DNA of 22,873 nucleotides from Geosiphon pyriformis uo1 (Eukaryota; Fungi; Glomeromycota), in contig JAAOMT010000063.1 of NCBI GenBank assembly GCA_016748015.1, forward strand, positions 1-22,873. The letters are read 5' to 3'. This document shows positions 1,733 through 22,873 of the stretch, in pieces. The notes beneath the pieces were generated by a model. It searched no databases. It was not told the DNA's origin and saw only the letters and a list, made by a program, of their open reading frames with translations. The position numbers and the translations under genes were made by a program. Position 1 is the stretch's first letter, and the number at the start of each line of letters is the position of its first letter.

Positions 1733-2007
1733 TTTTAAAATTTGATATTAAATATCAAATATATTTTTTAATCATATTTTATTTAATAATTTTCAAATAT
1801 TACAATTATATAAATTAAAAAAAGATAGATAAATATCAACAAGTAATTTTTTATTTCAAAATATTCAAATACTTGAAAATAAAAAAGAAAAAAAAGAAAA
1901 TAAACAATAAAAAAAAGATTAAGTAAATAGATATTGTTTTATTCTTTTGATTTCTTACATATATTTTTATATCTAAAAAACTTATTGCTTATATAGTTAT
2001 TAAAAAT

Positions 2008-2091
2008 AGTCAACAATCAGATTATTAATTAGATTAATGATCAAATTAATAGTTAGATTAACAATTAAATTATTGATTAAGTTAATGATTA
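2008..2091. repeat. degenerate 12-bp tandem repeat, 7 copies
   Basis: agtcaacaatca gattattaatta gattaatgatca aattaatagtta gattaacaatta aattattgatta agttaatgatta. Confidence 0.7.
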
Positions 2092-2464
2092 CTATTTAAA
2101 AATAGTACAAAAAATTATATAATATTAGGGACTAATATATATAATAACTAATAAAAACTATGGTTTTTAATCATAATATTATTTTCTCTAAAAAAATTAA
2201 ACCCTGGTAAAATCAAATTATTTATGAGATATTCTATTTGAAAAGTTTTGTTTAGCTCAAAACTAACTAGTTTGTTAAAGTTTTTTGTAAATAAAATATA
2301 TAGTATATAAGATAAAAAATAAAAAAAAACTTTCTCTTGTTGATCCTCTGACCATGAAGAGAGCTATAGTTTTTTGTTTAAAGAAGTTGTTTTTTTTTCC
2401 TTTTTTTTCCTTTTCCTTTTTGTTTACTTAAATCATTTCTTCCAATGCACTTTTTTTTGTCATA

Positions 2465-4431
2465 ATAGAACCAGTGGGCACACTTACTGGTGGTTTTGGT
2501 TCATTGTCAACTGAGTTGGAGTTCCAGTCTAGTAATAAGAATAACAAAAAAAAACACAAGTCAATAATGTGTACTCTTGTGGTTTTTTTTTTAAGAAACC
2601 AAAGAAATCTGAAGCTTTTGGTACTGTTGTGAATTTGTCGGCTGGGTCTTTGTTTGCTAAGATATTGTAAACTACTAATATTAGGCATGACAAATCTTGG
2701 AGCAGTAAGATAGAAAGTGAGAAAAGCAGTGTAAGTAGATTGTCAGATGTAAAAAACTTGAAGAATACAGTCACTGAAGAAATGAGCTATGTTGACTCCA
2801 ATGCTTCTAAAATAGATGACATGATAGATGACACAACTCCTAAGAAGACAAGAACAAGAACTTATGTCTTGGGGCAACTGCCAAAAGCTTCTTTTTTTGT
2901 GAATGCAAGTAACAACAATAGTAAATTAGTGCTCTCAGTGCCTAAATTTGTTAGATCCAATCAGCTGCTGTCTGCCAAGTCACGTGTTCTAGAAAAACGG
3001 AATTTCAAGTCAGTAAAATTGTTTGTGTTAGATGTTAAGTTGTCTGTTGTTCTTAGAAAGACTAATAGTGATAAATTATTGGCAATAAAAAATTTTTTTT
3101 ATTAAATTGATGGTTTTGGAGAGGCATTGACTCTTTTAAAATTTCCAGACATCATTAGAGCTTCATTTACTTCTGAGTTTAGTTTGAATAAGGCAAAGAT
3201 ATTGACAATCTGTGAGAAAATTATTGTTAATAATGATTTAAGAAAAATAAATAGCTGTTCAGATTAGGAGGTAATTATCAAGGAGATTCCAGTCAATCTT
3301 TTCAAATTGGCTATAGAATCTGTTTTTTTCAAGTTTGGCAATGTAGTTTCAATTAAAGTGCAATTAATTGGTCTGTGGCAAAAAGCCTTAGTGGAGTTTG
3401 AGTCTTCTGAAATAGCTGATTTGGTCACAGCTAGATGGTCTGTCTTTATGAGAAAAGATTCTGTTTATGTAGCAAAAGCCATTAATGATAAACAAACATG
3501 AGTTTTCAGAAATTACCATCGGGCTTTGTTGTACACACTTCTAGTTGGTACCACTGCTCATGATTTGTCAGGTTTAGTAGATTCTTATGGTGAGAAAACT
3601 TGCTTTATTGGCTGTAATCTTGGTTTATATGTTCATGATAGATGCACTGTTGTCTGTTTTAATAGTGAGACATTCAAATTGGCTGCTATTGGTTCTGTTC
3701 CAGTTTATAAGGGTGTGAATTTACACTGGGCTGGTCTTTTTCTGGCTTGTTGCACCAAGTGTAGACAATTTGGTCATATTTCTAATGCGTGTTTAATTGG
3801 TGAGAATTCTGGAGTTTGTCGTAAGCAGGTGGTATCTTCTTAAGATTAGGTTTGTTTAGCTAAGATTTATAAGAGAAAGCAGGCTCTGGTTGCCTGTTCA
3901 ATGTCTTTTGATAGAAAAACTTAGGCCCAAGTTGCAAGTGGCTTTTTTTTTTATGTGGTCTTGTTAGTTTTTTCTGGTATTGGTTCGCTTTTAAGTGTGA
4001 AACTCTTGGTAATGACTTCCAACCTTCTTGATGATTCTGGTTTGGCCAACCATATGGCTTTTTTGGAGCATTCTTTGGAGCTTTTGTTGGATCGGATTTT
4101 AGATATTTTAAAAAGATTGAGCCTTGTAAATTTGATGTCAATGTCATTGCCACCTTGTGCTCCTCCCCTTCTTGTTGCTCCTTCCCTGAATTAAGTTTTG
4201 AATTCGGATATGACTGTGGATAGTGTGGTAGTGCTCTCTTCTTCTTCTCTTCCGTTGGTCAATAATGCTACTCCCAAACTAAGTCTGAGTAGTTCAAAAG
4301 TGCTTACCACCAAGATCGGTGGATTGAAATCAAAAATGATGGCTCTGGAGATTTTAGTCAGTTTGGTTTTGGCAAGTTTGGACTCTTTGTGTTCTGGTTT
4401 GGGTTTGTTGTCTCTTTATTCATCTCAATGA
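2465..4431 (+). pseudogene. LINE A ORF1 (nucleic-acid chaperone: RRM-like plus CCHC zinc knuckle), multiple stops
   Basis: RRM-like IESVFFKFGNVVSIKVQL..KALVEFESSE (3307-3420); knuckle CTKCRQFGHISNAC (3751-3792); C-terminal coiled segment ending at TGA 4429-4431. Start is inferred at ATA GAA CCA (ATG>ATA). Confidence 0.85.
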
Positions 4432-7400
4432 TCAGTTTAGTTTGGAAAATTGCTATTTGTAATGTTCAAGGTATAAATAATCCTGCAAAACAGGAGGATA
4501 TTGTTCATTGACACAAAGATATAGGCAATTTAATTTCAATTATTACTGAGACCAAGTTACAAAGTAGGATCTATCTATGAATTGCTAATAGGTTTGATGG
4601 TGTCTGGGTTTTTACTTCTGGTGTGGACTCTGGTAACTTAGATTCTGGTGTTGCTATTATTATGGATATTTTTCTGGCTCATTATGTGTGTAAAATTTCT
4701 GAAATTCCTGGTCAGCTCCTCTCTGTTAGACTACTTTTCAAAAGCAAACTTTCTATTTCAATTTTGGGGTTCTATGCTAGTGCTTCTTTGTCAGTTCAGT
4801 TCTCCCAAGCTGGTGAAATCAACTCTATGATTACTAAAGCTGTGAATGAGTTTTCTTTTGTTGTTTTGGGTGACAACTTCAATGAAAATAGTTCTTATAA
4901 GTGTGCTAGTTTCAAAAAATGCCTAGATCTTGGTTTAATCAACTCATTTTGTGAAAGTTTTTTTGTTAAGACTCTTACTTGGGCCAATTTTTATGGTGTG
5001 GCTAAAATGATCAACTTTCTGTTCATCTTTTTAAACTTGGTTAATGCTGTGATGGATTACAATGTGTGTGGTGTTGGGAAATTTTTTGATACTAATCATT
5101 GGGCTGTTTCTGTGTCTGTGGGTTTGGGTGGACTTTTAGATATGTAATTGAACTCTTTTCACAAGCAAGTAAATAGAAATTAGTGGAAATTTGATTTTAA
5201 GGGTGCTGATATTAATAAGTGAAAAATGGTACATTGACCAATGCTGGGATGTTTTCCAATAAATTTGTTACTGCTGTCAAGCTCTTAGACCTGGATGCCA
5301 TATGGGATGTTTTGCATAGAATAATGACTCTTTCAGCAAATGAGATATTTAAAAAGAAGTGGTTTAAGGATTTTGATAGTGTGTTCACCAAAGTTTTTTC
5401 AAGATGTTACAGATTGGAGCTTTTAGTTTTGAAAATTATCAAGGTCTCTTGTAAAGGAAGTAGCATTAGTTTTGTCTCTCTTATAAAGTGCTGGGCCTCT
5501 TTGGATAGTGTTAAGACCTTAGTTGTTTAGGATTTTATTGACTCTGGTGCAAACTCTAATCATGTTCATTTTGCTCTCTCTGGCATAAGGAAGTTATATC
5601 ATGCATTTAAGCTTGCTGAATCTCTGGCAGCTAAGGAAGCAAACATTAAATCTGCTATAAATAGGAGAATAAAAAGCTTTAAGATGAATAAGAATCATAC
5701 TATCAGGAGTGTTCTGGAGCATTCTTTCTACAAAATGGTTCTGGACCACCTGGTTGTTAATGATGGGCTTATCTTAGAGCCCAATTCAGTTAAATCTAAG
5801 GTAGACATTATTATGGAAGGTTGGACCAGGAAGCATAGTGTGGTTGCTAATATATCTGATACTTGGTTTCATCAATATTGGCCATTGGATTATGTTTTTG
5901 ATAAGACTTTTTCTGGTGTTATGCATTCAGTTGAGTTTAGTGAGCTGCTTAATATAATTTCCAATCTGCCTAATGGTAAAGCTGCTGGTCTCTTGGGTAT
6001 TATAAATGAGCTTTGAAAACATTGTGACAGGTCAATTCTGAATATGCTTTTGGTACTTTTGAACTTTTGTTTTTCTTGTGAATCAGTGCCCAGATCTTGA
6101 AAAGAGGCTTGAGTCTCGATAATTCTTAAACCATATGAGTGGGAAAGTGTTCTTACAAATACCCACCCTATTGCTTTGATCAAAACAGCTTATAAGATTC
6201 TTTTTAAGATACTCTTTGATAGGATCTCTTTGGCATGCAGCACTTTTAACATTCTTTATGAGAACAATTTTTCAGTTTTAAAGGGTATGACAACTCAGTC
6301 TCCTATTTTTGCAATTGGATTAGTGGTTGAGGATGTGTTGGAAAAGAATTGGAAGCTCTGGCTGGTTTTGCAAGATATGTGGAAAGCATATGATTCAGTT
6401 GGCTGAAAACATCTCAAGAAAAGTTTGGTCAGAATCAAGATGTATGGCAGGTTCATTTGGTTTTTTGGTGCTATTTATAAGAATTGTACCAACAGAGTGA
6501 TGACAGATTTTGGGTTGACAGATGGTTATTGAATACATAATGATTTGGACTAGAGAGAGGTTTTTTCTCCCCTTCTGTGGCGTATATTTTATAATCTTCT
6601 GTTGTGTGAAATCAATCATTAGGAAAGTGTATACAGGTATAGAATCAATTCTCACTTTATTTTCAGGAGTAGTTGCATTGAATCTCAGACCGGGATCTTT
6701 TCTTTCTTTGCTGCTAGTACTTTTGTTGATGATACAATTTGGGTTGGTAGCAGTCAGAGTGCTACTCAACACATTTTTGATGTTGCTAGTAAGTTTTTTT
6801 GAATCAATAACATTTCTATTAATAATAATAAAACAGTGATCATTTCCATCAACAGCAGAATTAGTAATCTTTCTCTTTTTATTAGTGGTTTGCCCATTTC
6901 TATCACAAAAAAGGGGGAGTCTTATTGGTATTTGAGTATTTTTTTTTTAACTAAAGGTCTTTTAAAGCCTAGTTTGGTTAAGATGCATTTGGATGTTTAT
7001 TTTTTTACCAACCTGGTCCTGAAGAAAGCTGTTTTGGATAAGCAATTCTTGTATTTGGTGTTAGTAGTTCTCTATTCTATTGTCAGTTATAGAACTCAGT
7101 TTAGCTTTGTTCCTATTGATGTGTGTAATAAGTGGGATGCTCTAATTTGTAAAAACTTAAAACTTAAGTCTGGTCTGCCTTTTGACTTTCCTTGTGATAT
7201 AATACACCATTTTTCATTTTATGGTCTAAAGTTTTTCTTGCAAATTCAATTTGAAAGTAAGATTGCATCTCTTGTTAGCTTTGCAAACTCTGGTGGAGTT
7301 CTGAATTGCTTGTTTTCTTACTGGTTACATGACTTGCAAGTTTGGTGTTGGCACTCTGTTTATCTATTGGTTTCTTCTGTTTGTACTTATATCAATGCCT

Positions 7401-9106
7401 TTAATAATTTTTTGGCAGACATGGTTCGTATTCTCTTTGATTGTGATTTGTTTTTAAGTGGCTCTTTGGCCAATTTTTTTTGATTTTGTAGTGAAATGCC
7501 CATGCTGGTTGTTCTAAGTGAGTCAAGGTTTGTTAAGTTTCTCTCTTCTCTCTGGTAGTATGGTATTGTTTTTGTAGATTAACTTTATAATCATCATGGT
7601 GCTGTTTTTGATTTGTATACTTTTAAGTGGTAGAAGAGATTGGACCTCTGTGGTCCTGTTTCAGAGTGGTTCAAGCTGTCTGCTGCTTTTTTCAATGATG
7701 TGAATTTGTCTTCAACTCGTCCTTTGGCTGTGTATGATAGTGGTTCTTTAGACATTTATGGGTCTGATGACTTTGTGTCTGTTTGTAATTGTCTTTTGCA
7801 GATTAATGCTGGTGAGTTGTCTGTGTACATGAATAGATCTTTGAAAGATCTGGGCATGGCTAGCTGTAGGACTGGTGCTGCTGTTTTTTTTGGGGACATT
7901 AATTTGGGTTTGGGTGTTGGTATGTCTGGTATAATGTCTTTTACTCTGGCTGAGTTGTAGGCTATTGTCTTGGCTCTGAAATGTATTCCTCTATCCAGTT
8001 TTGTTTACCTGTTTTCAGATAGTCAATCTGCTTTGGATGCTTGTAAGTCAAAACTGGGTCTGGTGTGTCCTGATTTTCGTAATTAGTGTTGGATAAAGCA
8101 TTGTCATATTATTAATGTTATTCATGGTAAGAATCTAAGGATTATTTGGCATAAGATGAAAGACCACTTTGGTGTTTTAGGGAATGAGTGTGCTGACATG
8201 ATTGCTGGTGCTGCTTCTCTTTCAAGTTGGTATCTCTCTTCTTGCCTGGATAAACATTTTATTATGGCTGATTATAGTATAGTTTTTGGTAATTCTAGAC
8301 ACTTTGTTTATGATATCTTTTATTCTATTTGTCATGCACATTAGAAGGTTGGTTCTAGTTTGAGGTTTTTGGAAGATGGTCTGCTTTTTGATATTGATTG
8401 AGTACACCCTTCGTTGGTGTGGCATTCTGATTTGTACATGGCTACTGGTTTTACCAATCAATCTTCAGTTAATGCACACACATATTTCATGAAGATTTTA
8501 CATCATTGCTTGCCCATTGTCATTCAGAAACGTCTTTATAGTAGACTTTATCCCAGTGTTTTGTGCTTATATTGTGGTAATGTGGAGGTGTTAGATTATG
8601 CATTCTCTTGTAGAATTGATGAATCTATCTGCCGTCAGGTATTGGCTTTTTACATAGATTCTTGGAAGGCTCTTTCTGGTCTCACTCATTCTTTTTCATG
8701 CATGTTGCAACTATTATTGTTCTGTACTTCTGGTTCTTTTGTATCTACAGCTTTCTTCAAGGGTTTTGTTTTTGATGGTTGGTTCTACAAAACTGTTTCC
8801 ATTTTTTGTGATCCTAAGGTTGCTAATATGGAGATTGTCAAATTTGTGCACTCTCTCAGTGTGGCTTTTAGAAATGATATTTGGTTGGTTCATGCCAAGC
8901 ACTGCACTTATATGAAAAAAAATAGTTTAATTTCCCTTGATAGTTCAGCAGTTGTTTCAGTTTTTGGTTTGGCTTTGGGATTTTCTGTTGATGTGCTAAA
9001 GCTGCTTGGCATTGCTGATGCTTTTGGTATACATTTTGGTTTTCACAAATCTTGTTCATTTTTTTTAGGTATTAGTGGCTCAGTGTCAGTTCATATAGCT
9101 GCATAG
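4428..9106 (+). pseudogene. LINE A ORF2 polyprotein (AP endonuclease, reverse transcriptase, RNase H, C-terminal Zn finger), multiple stops
   Basis: APE: MISLVWKIAICNVQGIN..ITETKL (4428-4560), LGDNFNE (~4865-4885), TNH (~5091). RT: KAAGLLGI (~5980), NTHPIALI (~6160), QDMWKAYDSV (~6370-6400), LD*REVFSPLLW (~6545-6580), FVDD (6722-6733). RNase H: VYMNRSL (~7823), LAEL, FSDSQSAL (~8012), KDHFGVLGNECAD (~8160-8200). Zn finger CLYC-x-C (~8564-8610). Stop TAG at 9104-9106. Confidence 0.95.
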
Positions 9107-9228
9107 TGTTGTTTTGATTGGTCTGAGTGGCTGGTCACGTGTAAAAAGTACATAATTCACACATAGTTTAGATCATTTCTTTGATGTATAGTGCTAGACT
9201 GTGTTTGAACCTCACTCATTAAATATAT

Positions 9229-9248
9229 AAAAAAATAAAATAAAATAA
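9229..9248 (+). other. A-rich 3' tail of LINE A
   Basis: aaaaaaataaaataaaataa, about 120 bp after the ORF2 stop. Confidence 0.7.
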
Positions 9249-9304
9249 GCTTTGTATCTAAGAAATCAAATTTTTATATAAAAATTTTAGCTTTTTTGGC
9301 AATA

Positions 9305-12300
9305 ATTTCTTAACTTTTAACCAAATTACTAAAAAATTCTTATCTTTAATCAAGTTTGCAATATGTTTTTTTTTCATTCAACAGTAATTACAAAAGTCTA
9401 AACTCAATTACTTCAATACTAAAATACAAGTATTCATAACAGTCTGGTTATTTAAATACACTATTTTAGCACAAGAAAAAGATATACACTTTAGAAAAAG
9501 AGCTACAACATATAATTTGGTTAGTATTAATAACAATAACTTATAAACTTTGATCTCAACCCTTAAATTCACTTCAAAAAAATATGCAGCAGCTCTATTA
9601 GTAATAGCAGAAAAACCTAATTTTTTAAAGACTTATCAGTATATATATTAATTTTATTTGACCAGATCTTATGCAAACACTTTTTCAGTATTGAAAATTT
9701 ATTTAACAATAAACACTATCATTTACCAACCCAGAAGTTATACCAGAAGATACTAATACAAGATTAGAATTATGTAAAAACTTTAATATCAAAACAAACC
9801 AAAAAGATATAAACTTTATAGAATCTAATTTTTTTTAGTAGCAAAATGTTTTTTAATTTATTATTTTTCTTTTCTTGTCCAAAAGTATGTTACAAAAAAT
9901 CATTTCAAATTTTATCAAGAACCAATTTTATTAAAATACAGAGAAACTCTTAGAATACTTAATATAAAAAACTTGTCAAAATTAAAAAATACATAAGGCA
10001 AATTATTTACCAACAAAAAACCATTGTCCCAAAAAATACACATTAATTTAGCCAAAAATTGTTAAAAAAACTGACTTATAACCAAATTAGATATTGCAAA
10101 AAATTCAAAGAAGCCTAGTTCAAAACTTAAAAATCCAAGAACATAACCAAAAAATTAACTAAAAATACCAGCAGCATTTATAAAAGCAATAGTTGAAGCA
10201 ATTTTTTTTTTAATTTGAACTTGCTCAAACGTTTTTAGATTATATAATAAAAAATGATGCAATATATTACTAAAAAAATCGTGAAATAAATCAGTTTTTA
10301 ATCTAAAAAATTTTTTGACTATAATATTTTATTAACAGCAACTTTAGAAAAAACAAAGCTAAACTGTAATCAATACTCAATTATAAATTGCAGAACAGCT
10401 AAAATCAGATAAAAAAATTGTTTATTTATAATAGCTTTTTTTAATACCATATTTAAAAAAAACTTAATATTAAACTGAGTCTTGATTATACTGGGTTTTA
10501 ATAAATTATCTGTCAATAAAAAATATTCAAATATCTATGTGGTATTTTACTTTTGAAAAATAAAATTAGTAGTCTACTAATTCTTAAAAAAACATTTTTA
10601 ATTTGTTAATTAATAAAAATAACTACTGTTTTATTAATATTAATTAAGATATCATTAAATAAAAAAAATTTACGGGCAATATTTAATATATATTGTATAA
10701 AAGTTTGATTATTTTCAATCCTAATAGTGTCATCAATAAAAGCACCAGTTATAAGAAAAAAATTTTTTTTTTTTTGGTATTTATACTGTTTGTTTTGACT
10801 ATAAATCTGGTATTAATTTAATATCTATATAAATATTCATGTTTTTTAATCTTATATAAAAAAGAGTTATAGAAGATTCTTTAAAAAAAAGAAGAGAATA
10901 TTTTATTTTGATATAATTTATTATGTACTTAATATTTACATATAAGGCCAAAGTTTGTTATAACTTTATTTATCTTGTTTTTATAAATACTGTTAAAGAA
11001 ATTGATAAATTTCTTACGTATTTTGATATACTGCATATTGGTTTTTAAATAAAACTAATCAACAGAATTATATGTTTTGTACATATTTTGTAATACCAAT
11101 CAAATTTTTTTATTCTTTTTTAAAGCATCTTTAATTATTAAGCCAATAGCAAAAACAAAAAACTACATCAAAGTACTTTTTAAAACAGAAAAATTGTCAT
11201 TACAAAAAACATTAAATCAGTTATATACAAATGAGATCCAATCTGAAAAAATTTTTAAAAAAATTTTCTTAGCTGTTTCAATCAGAGTAATTAGCTTAGT
11301 GTTTATAAAAACTTTATTCTATTTATAAAATTTAGATATTATAGAGACTTATGCCCTTTTTTAAAAAATTGATATTATACTCAAAAATAAACATGAGTTT
11401 AAAAAAACTAAAAAACATTTAATAATATTTTTATTATAATATTTTTACAGTTTATTTAAAATACTATTTAGACCAACAGTTTTTCTATTTAGCAAATCTT
11501 TTATTACATAAACTAATTTTTTAAAACCAATAACACTTATAATTTTTAAAAAGACTTCATTATTTATATAATTCAAAAAGCATATTAATTAATTTAGAGC
11601 CTTGACAATAATCCAAAAATCATATATTTTTTGGTCTAATTTTTTATAATAACATCTACTTTAAATTTAATTTTATTAGACTTCAAAACCAGTTTTTTAT
11701 TAACTCTTAAATAATCTAATATTATCTTATAAAACAGCTTTTTTAATATATTTCTAATTATGTAGTCTTTATTTAAACAAAAATTTTCTATTTTTTTCTT
11801 AATTACACATTTAATAGTAATTATTTTAGCAGCTTTAAACTTATACAATTTGGATTTATAATAATTTTTTCTGATCTTAAACATAATAACTAAAAACATT
11901 TATTAATTTAGCTTTATTTTAAATTATAATTTGTATTTTAGAAGTTTTATTTCTATTAACAACTAGCCAAATGTAAAATAGAATATTAGTTTTAAACATA
12001 TCACTAGATCTAAAAAATTTTATTATTTTGATAACTAATAATTCCAATTTAAAAAACTTTAATAACTGTTTATTAAAAGAATATTTGATCTTATTATATC
12101 AATATTTAAAGAATATCTTATTAGCTAATTTTACTATTACATTTCTTAAAAGATTATACATAATATTTAGATTATTTTTTTTATTTGTTTTATTGAATTT
12201 ATTAATTATTAAATAGAGTTTAATTAAAAAAAAATCATAAAAATTATTCTATTTACTATTATTAACATCTCTAATCTTAAATTTCTAATGATTTCTATTA

Positions 12301-13040
12301 ACTTGTTTATGCATACTATTTAAACAAATATTTAAAAAACCATTCAGATCAATTAAAACCAAAACAGTCTTGTAATTAATATTAAAGAAGTCAAATACAG
12401 AGTTAATTTTATGTCTAATAACTGCAAATGACAAATTTTTACTTATAAAAATATAATCTATAATTTTCTTAATACTTTTAAAGTTGCTTTAAGTAAAAGC
12501 TTTAATCAGTAAATATTCATTAAAAAAATTAACTAAATTCAAATTCACACAAAACTTGAAATTCATATTTTTTTAGATCTATTTTTATTAAAATCTCTAT
12601 TTAGAACTATAAAAGTATTAAAATTAACAACTTAAACAATAAAAAAGTTGTTTTTAATATCAGATTAAATCTAGCTTTAACAGAAACATTAACATATAAA
12701 CCCAAAATTATAACTGAAATTTTGTCTTTAAAAAGAAGTTATATTAAAATAACATAATTAAAAATTTTTTTTATCTTAGAAATATGTCAAGCCAGAAAAT
12801 TGTTTATAATAACAGTTATTTTAGCACCAAGAAATTTTTTTTTAAACCAAATGTAAAAATCTGTACTCTATCAAACTTATCTATAATTTATAATCTAATA
12901 CTAAATCTTAATTTTGTTTCTGTAATAATAAAAACCATATTATCCAGACTTGTATGCCAATAAACAATATTTTTTTGTTTAACAAAAATATTAATACCTT
13001 AAATATTATACATAGCAAACTTTTATATTAAATTAGTTAT
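9305..13040 (-). pseudogene. LINE B ORF2 (APE-RT-RNase H), degenerate
   Basis: ITNLI*KFAMYNI*GIN..WH..IITETKLR from 13040. ORF 11636..11899 matches LINE A 5684 onward (IIRNILKKLFYKIILDYL..KFKVDVII). Also NTKLITLIETAKKI (~11300), FIDD, and RNase H IYTDKSL..RAAAYF. Confidence 0.85.
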
Positions 13041-14902
13041 TAAAATAAAAAAAACATTAGAGATTCCAAGCCAAAGCACAATTAATTCAATTTTACTAAA
13101 ACTAAATTAACCAAAATCTTAAGAGTTATTATTTTTGATTTCAAGCTATTTATTTTAGTAATCAGAATTTTTAAGCTATTTAAACTTAAATCCAAAACCT
13201 TATTTTTTATAACTAAAAAAGGAAAAATGAGTAATACTAATAGGTTTTTTAAAACCATATTCAAATTCAAATTCAAATTCAATAGTACAAAAACAATTAA
13301 AAAAAAAAATTAAGAAACAAATACTAAAAACACCAGATTTATAACACTTAATTTTTTCATAATTTCCAATATTCAATTAGCCAAAAGCTCTAAAAAACAT
13401 TCTAAAAAAGCTAAATAAGTTACAATAAAAGAATTGTCTTAACCAACCAATAAATTTCATTTATTATGAAAAATATTAAAAAGAAGAAATCCAAAACTAG
13501 AATTAAAACAAGTATTATTAGTAAAAACAGTAAATAAAACTACTTGCACTTATAATTTGTTACTAAAAGTAGCAAAACAAAAAATAAAAACATTTTTTTA
13601 ACATATAATCTAATCAATTAAAGACAATTTTTATCTAAAGCAATTTTTTTATATGTTTTCAAAAAAAACAAGATAAAAATATCTAATATATTACACTTTA
13701 AATTAAATGTTTAAATTGTTCACACTTTTTATATTAAACCAAATCCATTTTAATCTAAGAGAGTTTTACACTACCAAAAATTGACTCTGTATAAAAAACA
13801 AACTCTAGTTTTTTATTTAATTCAAAACCAATTACAGTATAACAAATTTTATTGCCAAAATTAAATTATTAATTTATAATATAAGTTTTTTTACAAGTTT
13901 TTTTTAATAAAGCACCAAGATTATAAACAGTTGTTTTTACAAACAAAGTAAACAAAAACATCTTAAACCAGTTCTTAAATATTCAAACATTACAATTTTT
14001 TAGTCTTACTATAGGTATTAAATCTTTTTTAATTAAGAATAACTACTTTACTGTTAACTAATTTGCTTAAACTGATTTGGTGAACTTTATTATAGCCTTT
14101 TGTCATAGTTTAATTAATTACAATTGAATTAACTTAATTTGACTAAACTCAGATACTACAGTAATAATTATTTTTTTTAATATATTTATAAAAATATTTT
14201 AATTATTATAGCTTAATCTGATCTAATTTTTTGTTTTTTAATATTACTGTTTATAATGTTTTTTTTTTAATCAATAATATGACTTTTTTTATGTTTTTTT
14301 TTTATGTAAATATATATTTAATTATCTTTTCAAATTTTGAAAGAGTACTAATCCTCCTAAAACTATTAATTATTAAAAAAATTTTTCAAATTTTTTGAGT
14401 TTTGTCTATTGTTAATTTGTTTTCTACTACTAATAAATTAATATATAAGGCAAAAAATTTTTTAATAACCACTTTTACTTAAGTTTTAACAATTTTAGAA
14501 TTAATTTATTTCTTGTTTAAAGATATATTGAAAAAAGATAGAAGGAATTTGATCTCTTTTTTCATGTTAAAGTTAAGAAAACCAAGAAAAATACCATAAA
14601 TTGTGTTAGTATTTATTCTATTAACTTTAAAAATAGTTGCTATTAAACCTAAAAAAGATTTACTATTAACACTTTCTATAATAAAATTATTTTTACTACT
14701 ACTAAACTTACTGTTCAAATCTGAATATATACTACCAAAATCTGATTTGACCAATAATATATCTTTTTTATCATTTAAATATTTAATATTACCAAAAATA
14801 ACTCTTTTTTCTGAAAAAAAAAGTCATTAACTAGATCATAAAAAGCCCCTTTGAACATTTTTTTTTAAATATACTATTGCTTAAAACAGTTTTTAAGTTT
14901 AT
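13037..14902 (-). pseudogene. LINE B ORF1, degenerate
   Basis: INLKTVLSNSIFKK..FKGAFYD.. matches LINE C VDLKAASNSSIFKKKTPKGALHD. Eroded knuckle YKKCEQFKH..C (~13693-13733). ORF 13082..13282 matches LINE A 4198..4431. Confidence 0.8.
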
Positions 14903-15063
14903 AATAAAGAAATTATTAAATTAAAAAATATTAATAAATAAATAACAAAAAAAACAAAAAACTTTTTTTACAAAATTATGCTCTTTAGGAAATTTAAAAC
15001 ATAAAAAAGAAAGAAGTTTATTAATAATTTTGTAAAAAATATAAAGTATTAATATAAAAAAAA

Positions 15064-18128: not shown

Positions 18129-18908
18129 ATGGCATATGTCCCAATTACCAAAATAAAAAAATTTACTGACAAAAAAGATAACACCCAAGTATGGCTCAAT
18201 AATTTGAAAAAAGCCATCACAACCAATAGATAAAATGATGCTAGAGCATTATAGGCAATCTTATATTTTCTACAGAACATTGCTAATTCATAATATTAGA
18301 GTTTGGCAAATAAACCCCAAAACTTTAATGTCTTTAAACTTGAGTTTCTAAGATATTTTAGTAATAATAACAGTATTAACCACTTGGTTAATACTTTTAC
18401 CACCATAAAACAAGAAGATGTCAAAGTAGTTACTACTTACTTGGAATGTTTTCATAGAAATCTGCACCAGATTCAAGCAATTAATGCCAACTATTTTACA
18501 GTGCCACAAATTTTGAATCAGTTTATCCATGGCCTGTGTAGTAGCATCCTCTAATGAATATGTCTATTGTATTTGGCAGACCTTTAAGCTGTGGTTACTT
18601 ATGCCAGAGATTTTAAAGCAGCTGAACTTAAAACTAATCACATTCAAGCCATCAATTTAGTAATAAATAGATCATCTAACTTGGATTCTAAATTGAAACA
18701 ATTCAGTAATTTTATCAACCAGAAAATCGAAAAATACTTAGTTAACAATTAGGCAATTTATCAACCACTATAGTGATACAATAACTCAAGAAATTCAAAT
18801 TGTTTTCAAAATCAGTTATGTCTATTGTCATCAACAAATTAGTTGTGATAGCAAAAAACACATGTCTGCCACTGCTGTGGTAAACAGGTACACTTAAAAA
18901 TAGATTGC
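18129..18908 (+). pseudogene. gag: Gypsy Gag (capsid-like retrotransposon Gag domain plus CCHC knuckle)
   Basis: MAYVPITKIKKFTDKKDNTQVWL..FNVFKLEFLRYF..TIKQEDVKVVTTYLECF..LNQFIHGL; knuckle CHCCGKQVHLKIDC at 18867-18908. Confidence 0.88.
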
Positions 18909-19499
18909 CAATTAAGATTAGATAACCAACAATTAGGAAGCCAATATCAAAACTCTGATTGCTGATTTCAAACTTCAAACCATTATCCAAATCAAGATCA
19001 ATATCAACAACATTACCCATCAATAACACAACAATTATACTTATTTTCAATCTATCAGGTACCAGCATTTATAATCTATTAACCACTACAGTCACAAATA
19101 ATTTATCAAACTTTACTAATTCAAACACTGTCATCAAACTCAGCTTAATTAGTCATTGGAACCCAAAGACTAAGAGTTATTCATATCTAACAAAACTGAA
19201 GATCAGCAATGGTCATGCACCAACCAATTCTCAGTTCTTCAACCCAATTATTAGGATTATAACAGTGGAGTTTAGAAACCAGATATATTTAAAACCTAAA
19301 TTTCCAGAACTATTTAAGTCTTCTGGTTACTCCAGAAGATACTACATCTAACAACCAGAAGACCAACCAAAAACTACTTACTAATAATATACTTCCAGCA
19401 ACCATTACTGAAGACAAATTACTGTCAGTCATCTTTCCCTTTAAACTTGAAAAATCAACTATATTACTTTTTAGTGAAGCTGCTCTTAACACCAAACTT

Positions 19500-19840
19500 A
19501 TTACTACAATATATACTAACACCAAAGTTGATGACCATCACATCAAATTAATTTTAGACAGCAGATCAGCAGGCAGCATTATTACATGACAACTCATGGA
19601 CCAATTAGGTCACTGAATTGATTGCACTATTAGAATTCGAATCATCCTTGCTAATAGAGTGACAAAAATTCTAATTGGCAAAATAAATAACTTCTTGTTT
19701 GAAGTCAATAGCATCAATGTATCAATCAAAGTTCTTGTCATAGAAGTCATTCAGTATCAAGCTTTAATTGGTAATAACTGGTTGTTTAAGACAAACACTG
19801 TGCTTGACTAAACTATTCAGGAATTGTAATTCAGCTAAAA
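19500..19840 (+). pseudogene. retropepsin-like aspartic protease
   Basis: IKLILDSRSAGSII (catalytic D at 19557; DSG>DSR by GGA>AGA) and ALIGNNWL (~19761). Same frame as Gag. Confidence 0.88.
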
Positions 19841-20979
19841 TGACCAGCACATTTGAGTATCAGTCATATATGATTATTTCAGACCAGCCAATACTACTTA
19901 AGTCCTACTAATTAATTTAAAAGAAGAGAAAAAAAGACCTATCTAAGAAGCCTACCAAGTTTTATAAGCTGACAAAAACCACAACAACTTACTACTAATG
20001 TCTACATAGGAGAAAAAAAGAAAAAGAAAGAAAAGAAAGGAAAAAAATTTCCAAGCAACAATATCCATTTATACTTTGTACACTACCAATCACTCCAGTT
20101 CAACCTACCATTGACCCAAATTAATGTGCATTAATTGTGGCAAAAAATTGTTGACAATGGGCACATGTTATAATAACAATAAAAAATAGCCAACAGTGAC
20201 AAAATATTACTGTTACCTATGTATCTTTGAATGCTTTGGATGACCTAAGAGACAGAGAAAATAGAACAACAAACCATGTCTCACTTGTGAGAAGATTTTT
20301 TTAGACAAAAAAATATGGAATGCCATTCCAGGGCAAGAGAAAACATGTGACAAATTGTGCCAATATATAATTCTAATTAACAACTAGGTAAGAAAAGAAA
20401 TGCTAATAAACACTGCCTAAAGAAGAGCAGTAAAACAATTAGATGGTTGTTCACACAATGATGATAAAATATGGCAAATAGTTCTTGCCAAAATTAAAGA
20501 CATATTATCAGAAGAAATAAGACAAATTAAAAACAACTCATCTGAATTCATTGAATTTGATTGGACTTTAAATCCTGATGTTGTCTTAGATCTCATAAAT
20601 TCAGAACAATTCCACAAACACTACCAAAAATTAGCATTTACTAGAAAAGAGCAAGAATAGCAATTAGAACAATTAAATACAAAACTCTGTAAACATTGCC
20701 TTATTCTCAATGATTTTAAGTATTGTAATAATTGTAATGTTGTTTACAATCCATCATCACACATAATCTACATGATTCCAGAAAAAGAAGAACCAATCAA
20801 CAGCTGTGCATTGAAATTGGAATCAACATTTAATTTTGATTCAAACTCCAACAATAATAACAACAATAATGATTTCAGTTTTATTCAAAATGACAATGAT
20901 AACAATGATAATTTGAACTCTAATTCAAACTTCAAACAATACATTGTGCTCTTTGATCTTTCTAAAGAGCAAGAACTCA

Positions 20980-21385
20980 AATGGTTCAGTGATAATGATG
21001 AAGATATTATGCCAGAATATTTACATAATACTAATGCAGGATTTGATTTGAGATATTCCAGAAAAGATGTCATTAAATTGAAACCACATTTATGCATCTG
21101 TATTAATATGAAAGTAGTACTGGAAATCTCAATAACAACAATAGTTTAACCAAAAAAAAGATTAATATTAAAGAAAAAATAATTGATGCAGAATATGTGG
21201 AAAATATTATTGCAATACTACAAAATAACTCAAAAAGACCTATATTATAAAGTCAAACAAAAAGATAGCACAGACAATATTTTTGTTTTTGGTTAAAATA
21301 ACTTAGTTAGTAATAGTAAAAAACAAGAAAAAATTAAGGATAACAGCAAGAAGAATAAGTAGATTCAAATCTATAAGTAGAATAG
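20980..21385 (+). pseudogene. dut: trimeric dUTPase domain within Pol, frameshifted
   Basis: Motif 1 AGFDL (21036-21050). Motif 2 is largely deleted (~21145). Motif 3 IIDAEYVENI, motif 4 KIAQTIF, motif 5 RRISRFKSISR (from RGxxGFGSTG; 21349-21381). Confidence 0.88.
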
Positions 21386-21829
21386 ATATATCAGTTAACA
21401 TGGCAGAAAAAAAAGCAATTAACAAAAGAGAAATTATCTCTATCTGTCAATTAATTTTCATTCTGCCATATAACCAGTACATGTTAATCATAGAAAAGAA
21501 AGTAAAGGAACAAGCTTAAATTTTTGAAGTTAAAACTACCATCTGTAAATCCAGAAAAATTGGATTCATTAATCTTTATATACTAGCCAAAAGCCTAAAA
21601 CACATTAAAATGTCTATTCACAATACAATAAGAGACATTATTGAAATACCAAAAAAAATTACCATTAAATATTTAAGCACTGAAGTAAAAAACCAACTGC
21701 CAAACACTATTTCAAATTTCTTACAACTGTGCAGATATGTAAATATCACATTACAAACAATATATGGACAAGAAAAATGTTATTTGTTCCAGCCAGAACA
21801 ATTAGAACAAATGAACTTGAGAAATCTAG

Positions 21830-22235
21830 ACTCACTATAACATATGCAACTCAAAATACTACTTAATAATTTCACTAATATCTTTGCCAGTGAAAATGAA
21901 TTTGGCAGAATAGACATCATTTAATACCAGATCAAGACAGAAAATACCATATTAGTCAAACAAAAAACAGATAGAGTACCACCAGCAAGCCATGAAATCA
22001 TCTAACAGGAAATAAACCAGATGTTAAACAATGAGTTAATTCAATTATTAATGAGTATATGGTCATTATTAGTGGTACTAGTCTGTAAAAAGAATGAAAA
22101 AATCCACTTTTGTGTAGATTACAGAAAACTTAATAGAATAATTCATAAAGACAACTACCCCACTTTATGTATTTAAGTATTATTTAATGTTTTTAGAGAA
22201 AAAAAATAGTTCTTAACATTGGATCTAGATAGTGA
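21830..22235 (+). pseudogene. pol: Gypsy reverse transcriptase, N-terminal part only
   Basis: QEINQMLNNELIQ..SIWSLLVVLVCKKNEKIHFCVDYRKLNRIIHKDNYP..FLTLDLDSD. Ends at motif A (LDLxSG), before YxDD. Confidence 0.93.
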
Positions 22236-22873
22236 TTAGGGATATTTATAGGGATAGGGATAGAGTTAGGAATATTTATAGGAATAGGAATATTTATAAG
22301 GATAGGAATAAGGATAGAGATAGGGATAGGGATAGGGATATTTATAAGAATATTTATAGGGATATTTATAAGGATAGGGATAGGGTTAGGGATAGGGATA
22401 GGGATAGGGATATTTATAAGAATATTTATAGGGATATTTATAGGGTTAGGGATAGGGATATTTATAGGGATAGGGATATTTATAGGGATAGGGATAGGGA
22501 TAGGGATAGGGATATTTATAGGGATATTTATAGGGATAGGGATAGGGATAGGGATAGGGATATTTATAGGGATATTTATAGGGATAGGGATAGGGATATT
22601 TATAGGGATAGGGATATTTATAGGGATAGGGATAGGGATATTTATAGGGATAGGGATAGGGATATTTATAGGGATATTTATAGGGATAGGAATAGGGATA
22701 GGGATAGGGATAGGGATATTTATAGGGATATTTATAGGGATAGGGTTAGGGTTAGGGTTAGGGTTAGGGATAGGGATAGGGATAGGGATAGGGATAGGGA
22801 TAGGGATAGGGATAGGGATAGGGATAGGGATAGGGATAGGGATAGGGATAGGGATAGGGATAGGGATAGGAGA
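22236..22873 (+). repeat. telomere-like array of in-phase hexamers: GGGATA (dominant), TTTATA, GGGTTA
   Basis: G-rich strand runs 5'->3' to the end of the sequence. 105 hexamers in unbroken 6-bp phase from 22239 to 22868, including canonical TTAGGG units. Confidence 0.88.

Follow-up and report, generated by a model that had tools for sequence, protein, structure and literature searches.

The window analysed here, a stretch of 22,873 bp that is one entire contig (C775) of the early-diverging fungus Geosiphon pyriformis (Glomeromycotina), ends in a genuine telomere written in three repeat words rather than one: GGGTTA (the canonical TTAGGG), GGGATA (ATAGGG) and TTTATA, the last of which occurs within a 12-mer. 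The words follow strict rules of order and recur at the other contig ends examined, where they lie in a common inner-to-outer sequence. The best explanation in our view, to which we give about an even chance, is that telomerase has used more than one template, either over time or in parallel, and that the end seen in the window was healed inside a Ty3/gypsy element.

Organisation of the terminal array

The array occupies positions 22239-22868 of the window on the plus strand and, together with a short tail, forms the final 635 bases of the contig. It consists of 105 hexamers in a single register, with no indel in 630 bases. There are 65 GGGATA, 22 TTTATA and 6 GGGTTA units, and the remaining 12 are G>A derivatives (five GGAATA, three AGGATA, two AGAATA, one GAGATA and one GAGTTA). 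The initial annotation of this stretch, made from the letters alone, had counted 105 hexamers without indel by hand, with 22 TTTATA, six GGGTTA, one GAGTTA and the rest GGGATA or its G>A derivatives, and the counts made by program are the same. Its start at 22236 was three bases early, as the bases before 22239 are the TTA of the junction, while the array itself is real.

The units are not evenly spread. An inner, partly decayed zone of GGGATA and TTTATA units (22239-22376, plus strand) holds 10 of the 12 G>A derivatives. All 22 TTTATA units fall within 22245-22736 (plus strand), as the 12-mer GGGATATTTATA interspersed with GGGATA. From the unit listing, the canonical repeat forms a block of four GGGTTA units at 22743-22766 (plus strand), with two lone GGGTTA units at 22383 and 22443, and an outer run of 17 pure GGGATA (22767-22868, plus strand) continues to the contig end. 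The final five bases of the contig, GGAGA (22869-22873, plus strand), are not a repeat unit. An AGA tail directly after the GG or GGG of the last repeat was found at three contig ends, as GGAGA in the window and as GGGAGA on C42 and C334; this could be either sequencing-adapter residue at a natural DNA end or a true variant of the terminus.

Every TTTATA in the window is preceded by a GGGATA-type unit (22 transitions) and is followed by another GGGATA-type unit (21) or, in one case, by GGGTTA (22437/22443). TTTATA never follows TTTATA or GGGTTA, and only 0.027% of 100,000 shuffled unit orders obey the rules of the window array. The same grammar holds genome-wide, with 337 occurrences of GGGATA-TTTATA-GGG and none of either GGGTTA-TTTATA-GGG or TTTATA-TTTATA. 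It had been proposed for the window that TTTATA occurs only after a GGGATA-type unit, is never doubled and never follows GGGTTA, and that the array is therefore made of discrete 6-base and 12-base units; both proposals agree with the genome-wide counts. The rule on GGGTTA stands as it was worded, but the converse order, TTTATA and then GGGTTA, is the one found once at 22437/22443.

Recurrence at other contig ends and read support

The genome searched comprised 128.3 Mb in 792 contigs and is about 93% complete by BUSCO; the published assembly of Geosiphon pyriformis is described as 129 Mb in 795 scaffolds with 29% G+C (PMC9453076). The G-strand of the window array runs outward on the plus strand and stops five bases short of the contig end. 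Genome-wide, (GGGATA)4 has 546 matches and (GGGTTA)4 has 884. Those of (GGGATA)4 that were placed are all terminal: minus-strand matches open a contig and plus-strand matches close one. We parsed 16 terminal arrays on other contigs unit by unit (1342 units in total). A seventeenth end, on C605, has a similar layout, and further contigs appear in the lists of telomere-word matches. The terminal arrays are short and alike in length (370-900 bp). Short G-rich tandem repeats of one family, with the G-strand pointing outward, are found at all of the ends that were parsed as well as on C605. ATAGGG accounts for 60% and TTTATA for 13% of the assembled units.

The words and rules of the window also hold at the 16 parsed ends. 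In their TTTATA-bearing zones, TTTATA comes after none of 25 GGGTTA units compared with 168 of 427 GGGATA-type units (Fisher p = 7e-6). The number of GGGATA between successive TTTATA is 1 (52 times), 2 (52), 3 (16) or more, which is roughly geometric with an excess of 2, and at most about five copies of the 12-mer follow one another. Irregular units are rare (11 of the 1342). As TTTATA and GGGATA differ by three transversions and intermediates between them are essentially absent, the words were copied as whole units and not made by point mutation.

Read support comes from Logan unitigs of run X1. These tile positions 22107-22335 with no differences, at a depth of ~90-150 that is similar to that of the unique flank, and they span the junction and extend over the first ~100 bases of the array, with two TTTATA units and several decayed ones; all of the sequence is from one sample, and X1 is probably the assembly's own data. 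Runs X2 and X3 gave no sequence of the window array. The initial annotation, which had the array terminal and correctly oriented, had named three ways in which it could be wrong: an interstitial array, other ends of pure TTAGGG, or a base-calling artefact. The window array is terminal, none of the 16 other ends is pure TTAGGG and the repeat words are present at each of them, and the short-read unitigs reproduce the junction and the variants exactly. One apparently internal case, an array on C44, adjoins a run of N and is therefore a scaffold join. From its terminal position, the outward G-strand, the recurrence of its words at contig ends, the presence of a TERT gene (see below) and the unitigs, the window array is a genuine telomere.

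Zoning, blocks and decay

The units are zoned along the telomeres. Mean relative positions at the 16 ends (0 inner, 1 outer) are 0.19 for G>A-decayed units, 0.35 for TTTATA, 0.51 for GGGATA and 0.71 for GGGTTA, and the order common to all ends, from the inside outwards, is decayed ATAGGG, ATAGGG with the 12-mer, blocks of ATAGGG and TTAGGG, and TTAGGG. Fifteen of the ends bear TTTATA, and at 14 of these the outer 22-80 units lack it; runs of TTAGGG terminate 9 of the 16 assembled ends. The window end is unusual solely in its finish of four GGGTTA and then 17 GGGATA. At most ends the outermost units also include GGGATA, both as blocks and as single units amid TTAGGG. The initial annotation had seen a system moving away from TTAGGG, which is not what the ends show, as pure TTAGGG runs are commoner than those of ATAGGG (the 884 and 546 matches given above) and end 9 of 16 telomeres; TTAGGG is not a relic.

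GGGTTA and GGGATA are arranged in blocks in the outer zones, with 167 runs observed against 254 expected (z = -8.8). The longest interspersion pattern common to two ends is 10 run-length tokens, compared with a mean of 11.7 in shuffles, so a pattern shared between ends is no longer than expected and each end was written independently of the others.

G>A is essentially the sole substitution type in the terminal arrays. It affects the first, second and third G of the unit (63, 94 and 99 cases, respectively, across all terminal arrays), is concentrated at the inner end and likewise marks neighbouring repeats. A decay this restricted indicates a directed transition process, as opposed to general ageing.

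Junctions with subtelomeric sequence

Immediately upstream of the array is a decayed Ty3/gypsy-type retrotransposon (18303-22238, plus strand), identified by Pfam and by reading of motifs, which the telomere cuts inside the reverse transcriptase. A Pfam match to Retrotrans_gag was found at 18303-18554 (E = 4.8e-6). In frame 0, 21901-22238 translates as ...FCVDYRKLN...DNYP...FLTLDLDSD, interrupted by stops, and continues directly into the array; the assignment to reverse transcriptase is from these motifs and not from an HMM match. The last hexamer before the array, TGATTA (22233-22238, plus strand), has TTA/TA microhomology to the repeat. Elsewhere in the window, 2000-9100 and 9000-15000 contain a long, stop-riddled LINE-like element on the plus strand with 33-36% G+C and positive GC skew, followed by a stretch of 17-19% G+C, and a run of N at 1395-1730 marks a scaffold gap near 1.4-1.7 kb. 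An Rfam scan of the window gave no match.

Five further unique junctions (on C358, C372, C28, C36 and C340) have TTA right before the first unit, which is GGGATA or a G>A-decayed GGGATA. More generally, where the junction with unique sequence is sharp, the first units are of the GGGATA/TTTATA type, often after TTA or GGTTA microhomology. The exceptions are C42 and C22, in which one decayed GGGTTA-type unit precedes those of the GGGATA/TTTATA type. The subtelomeric flanks are mostly unrelated between ends and most junctions are in unique sequence. The subtelomeres of C35 and C9, the only close pair among 17 ends, are 95% identical over 920 bases; their telomere unit maps nevertheless differ.

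The best explanation for the window end is a break within the Ty3/gypsy element that was healed by addition of repeats. Junctions that begin with GGGATA or TTTATA are more readily explained if an enzyme with an ATAGGG-type template added repeats de novo than if a TTAGGG array was invaded.

TERT and candidate telomerase RNA loci

Inspection of TERT had been suggested as a check, and a TERT gene is present. Matches to Telomerase_RBD over the Pfam cut-off were found on C572 and C608. The locus on C572 (C572:750000-760000) has long ORFs with reverse transcriptase motifs. On C608 (C608:674000-684000) there is a collinear copy, with ~50-80% protein identity to that of C572, which is split into short frames and is probably a decayed duplicate.

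The search for a telomerase RNA gene gave no such gene, and neither the 14-mer nor the 15-mer that correspond to the 12-mer unit has a credible non-telomeric locus in the assembly. The template word predicted by the initial annotation, the 14-mer TATAAATATCCCTA, has no copies outside telomere arrays; its single match lies inside the C605 telomere, with the caveats that the flank filter used to exclude arrays misses ~13% of flank contexts (pyrimidine-only flanks, for example) and that the RNA gene may be unassembled. Templates of the two hexamers are too short for a pattern search.

The 15-mer CCCTATAAATATCCC, which has CCC at both ends and reads, on the opposite strand, as the telomeric 12-mer plus GGG, was considered as a candidate RNA gene and rejected. 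It was found only in an exon of a P450-like family, at C64:4285, C572:1093517 and C783:494961. The three loci can be aligned as one coding family with introns, in which the sequence reads ...PPLVPYKYPLIGHTYE... and which is P450-like by its N-terminal PPLVPYKYPLIGH motif, and we take the presence of CCCTATAAATATCCC in this exon as a coincidence.

A telomerase RNA next to TSR2 was also rejected, as products templated by AACCCTATCC, the single telomere-like word at this place, would be TTTAGGG-like or 11 bases long, and the arrays contain neither. The two TSR2 loci (C651:961500-980800 and C489:43500-63000) are part of a duplication of at least 11 kb with 93-96% identity, mutually inverted in contig coordinates, and conservation of the candidate within such a segment is therefore uninformative. 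The C489 copy of TSR2 has an in-frame TGA. The duplication may be a recent segmental one, or a second haplotype or nucleotype that was assembled apart.

The pattern of a two-repeat template with GGGTTA at its end matched 21 times, in ~19 places outside arrays, all of them TTAGGG-TTAGGG, where ~1 would be expected by chance. They include C346:23111 and 23257, C421:7580, C581:29352, C681:191055, C710:454274, C624:321714 and C371:390504, and six of the ~19 have an identical next base (…GGGTTAT). These places may be short interstitial telomere tracts, mobile-element ends or an RNA gene. We know of no report of a telomerase RNA from Glomeromycotina.

Discussion

If telomerase used more than one template, three templated words would make all of the telomeres: TTAGGG, ATAGGG and the 12-mer ATATTTATAGGG (GGGATA followed by TTTATA). 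One template would be canonical, for TTAGGG. A second, with a single-base change, would give ATAGGG, and in one version this ATAGGG template would extend or read through a further six bases, UAUAAA, to produce the 12-mer. The telomerase RNA, or RNAs, would then hold TAACCCTAA, TATCCCTAT or TATAAATATCCC, and the templates could belong to telomerase RNA genes of this many-nucleate fungus that are paralogs or alleles of one another. Relative use of the templates would shift over time, with the rarely renewed inner part of each telomere keeping an older mix.

The discreteness of the units, their end-specific order and the healed junctions favour templated synthesis at each end, by telomerase rather than by recombination. 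The zoning shared by all ends suggests that the mix of templates in use changed over time. The blocks of GGGTTA and GGGATA would fit processive runs by different enzyme particles and do not fit misincorporation repeat by repeat.

Several points count against more than one template. No telomerase RNA gene was found in the assembly, the 14-mer being absent outside arrays and the 15-mer present only in coding exons. The grammar is also compatible with homologous copying, as recombination would preserve the context of each unit. A succession from ATAGGG and the 12-mer to TTAGGG would, oddly, lead back to the ancestral repeat. In addition, the contig ends may fall short of the true termini, which would place current additions outside our view.

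The main alternative is that telomerase makes TTAGGG only, and that ATAGGG and the 12-mer are an inner variant zone of rare origin, comparable to the proximal variant repeats of human telomeres, which slippage, unequal exchange between sisters and, now and then, exchange between ends have expanded and kept. The confinement of TTTATA and decayed units to the inner part, the dominance of TTAGGG in the outer part and its pure runs being the commonest genome-wide all agree with this, as do the lack of a 12-mer template in the assembly and the plain TTAGGG of the relative R. irregularis (10.1101/2022.10.19.511543), and copying by homology would preserve the grammar without any template. However, ATAGGG is the majority of the assembled units, recurs in blocks and singly well into the outer TTAGGG of nearly every end, and supplies the outermost 17 units of the window. 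The unique healed junctions begin with ATAGGG or 12-mer units and not with TTAGGG, even behind GGTTA microhomology, and the interspersion maps are not common to different ends. We consider a TTAGGG-only telomerase unlikely.

The initial annotation proposed one telomerase RNA with a template of approximately UAUAAAUAUCCCUA(U), whose two stopping points each finish in ATA and allow realignment, giving a 6-mer or a 12-mer at random. Such a template predicts exactly the rules that were found (TTTATA only after GGGATA, never doubled and then GGG), and the roughly geometric counts of GGGATA between TTTATA, with their excess of 2, are in keeping with it. It should, however, scatter TTTATA all along the telomere, including the outer units from which it is absent at 14 of 15 ends. 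It also yields no GGGTTA, the most abundant pure run, and gives no account of its arrangement in blocks with GGGATA, and the template word is absent from the assembly outside the telomeres. The proposal is weakened and not refuted, and we would now call it distinctly improbable.

Maintenance by recombination (ALT-like, by rolling-circle or break-induced copying) could shuffle and amplify blocks of the three words, and would explain both the block structure of GGGTTA and GGGATA and the short higher-order periodicity seen in places (GT repeated four to five times, GGT three to four times and a VG alternation repeated seven times on C9). This is very improbable in our judgement, given that an intact TERT is present, that the arrays are short and of similar length (370-900 bp), that no interspersion pattern is shared between ends and that equal lengths of neighbouring runs (48 of 122 against 41 expected, p = 0.06) are not significantly enriched. 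Finally, the idea that assembly or base-calling errors made these variants out of plain TTAGGG telomeres is close to refuted. Nanopore base-callers are known to miscall telomere repeats, and all of the data are from one sample; against this, there are no indels in 630 bases, arrays read as G-strand and as C-strand show the same three words, the grammar is stricter than noise allows, and the Logan unitigs match the junction and the first 100 array bases at ~90-150x with no differences.

Comparison with known telomeres

The nearest relative with known telomeres is Rhizophagus irregularis, in which (TTAGGG)n was found at both ends of 17 of 32 chromosomes (10.1101/2022.10.19.511543). The Geosiphon telomeres resemble these, and canonical fungal telomeres in general, in the hexamer with a GGG core, the outward G-strand, the short arrays and the presence of TERT, and TTAGGG is the commonest pure run here and ends most assembled telomeres. 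They differ in the predominance of ATAGGG and the share of TTTATA, in the zoning and in the strict rules.

Human telomeres have proximal variant repeats, TTGGGG, TGAGGG and TCAGGG, interspersed at their base. As in these zones, variants in Geosiphon are basal, the interspersion map is individual to each end and the canonical repeat is farther out. The likeness holds for TTTATA and the decayed units and fails for GGGATA: in Geosiphon this main variant makes up the majority of units and extends to the outermost assembled repeats, so that the outer part is not purely canonical. Unlike the human point variants, one variant here is an extra AT-only hexamer with a rule of context.

Mixed telomeres written by telomerase are known from Paramecium (TTGGGG/TTTGGG) and Plasmodium (GGGTT(T/C)A), and plants have telomerase RNA paralogs with different templates. 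These systems share with Geosiphon the presence of at least two related repeat words on the same telomere. Paramecium and Plasmodium, however, choose the word independently at each repeat, whereas here the words are in blocks by the runs test (z = -8.8) and in zones, and the system is known from its repeats and not from a telomerase RNA.

Long units occur in other fungi. The telomere repeat of Aspergillus oryzae is a 12-mer. The Yarrowia clade has repeats of the form TT-spacer-AGGG (PMC12449055). The 12-mer of Geosiphon can similarly be read as AT-ATTTAT-AGGG, with an AT spacer within the ATAGGG motif, which parallels the first step proposed for the divergence of yeast telomeres. In the Yarrowia clade and A. 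oryzae, the long unit is the sole repeat, whereas here it is optional and interspersed with two hexamers, in runs of about five or fewer.

None of the known systems compared here matches in full. A literature search found no fungus for which ATAGGG or this 12-mer is described as the telomere repeat, and nothing on the telomere composition of Geosiphon, in line with the earlier suggestion that the system is undescribed. The one match of a metagenome scan for the G-T-G-T-G word was a chance 12-base triplet in a bacterial contig, unrelated to telomeres.

Implications

Telomere repeats are usually uniform within a species, and switches of repeat are known mainly from their end states and from engineered template mutants. 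Geosiphon is a wild fungus with three templated words, strict rules and a common spatial order at its chromosome ends. It could show how variant templates coexist, how far telomere-binding proteins tolerate mixed arrays and how a six-base spacer enters a repeat. On a practical level, a telomere finder set to TTAGGG alone will under-call the ends of this genome or trim them wrongly, and the repeats themselves define what the telomerase RNA template or templates must encode.

The preferred reading, more than one telomerase template, may be taken a step further. Templates with TAACCC, TATCCC and a UAUAAA-extended TATCCC could be held by different nuclei or paralogs that share a cytoplasm, and shifts in their frequencies could have written the same inner-to-outer order at every end, so that the telomeres would be a tape record of competing telomerase RNA templates. 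We offer this tentatively, as a possibility that is rather unlikely. If it is true, Geosiphon would present a natural replacement of the telomerase template in mid-progress, with an AT spacer as the initial step of the kind of repeat lengthening that has been inferred for yeasts.
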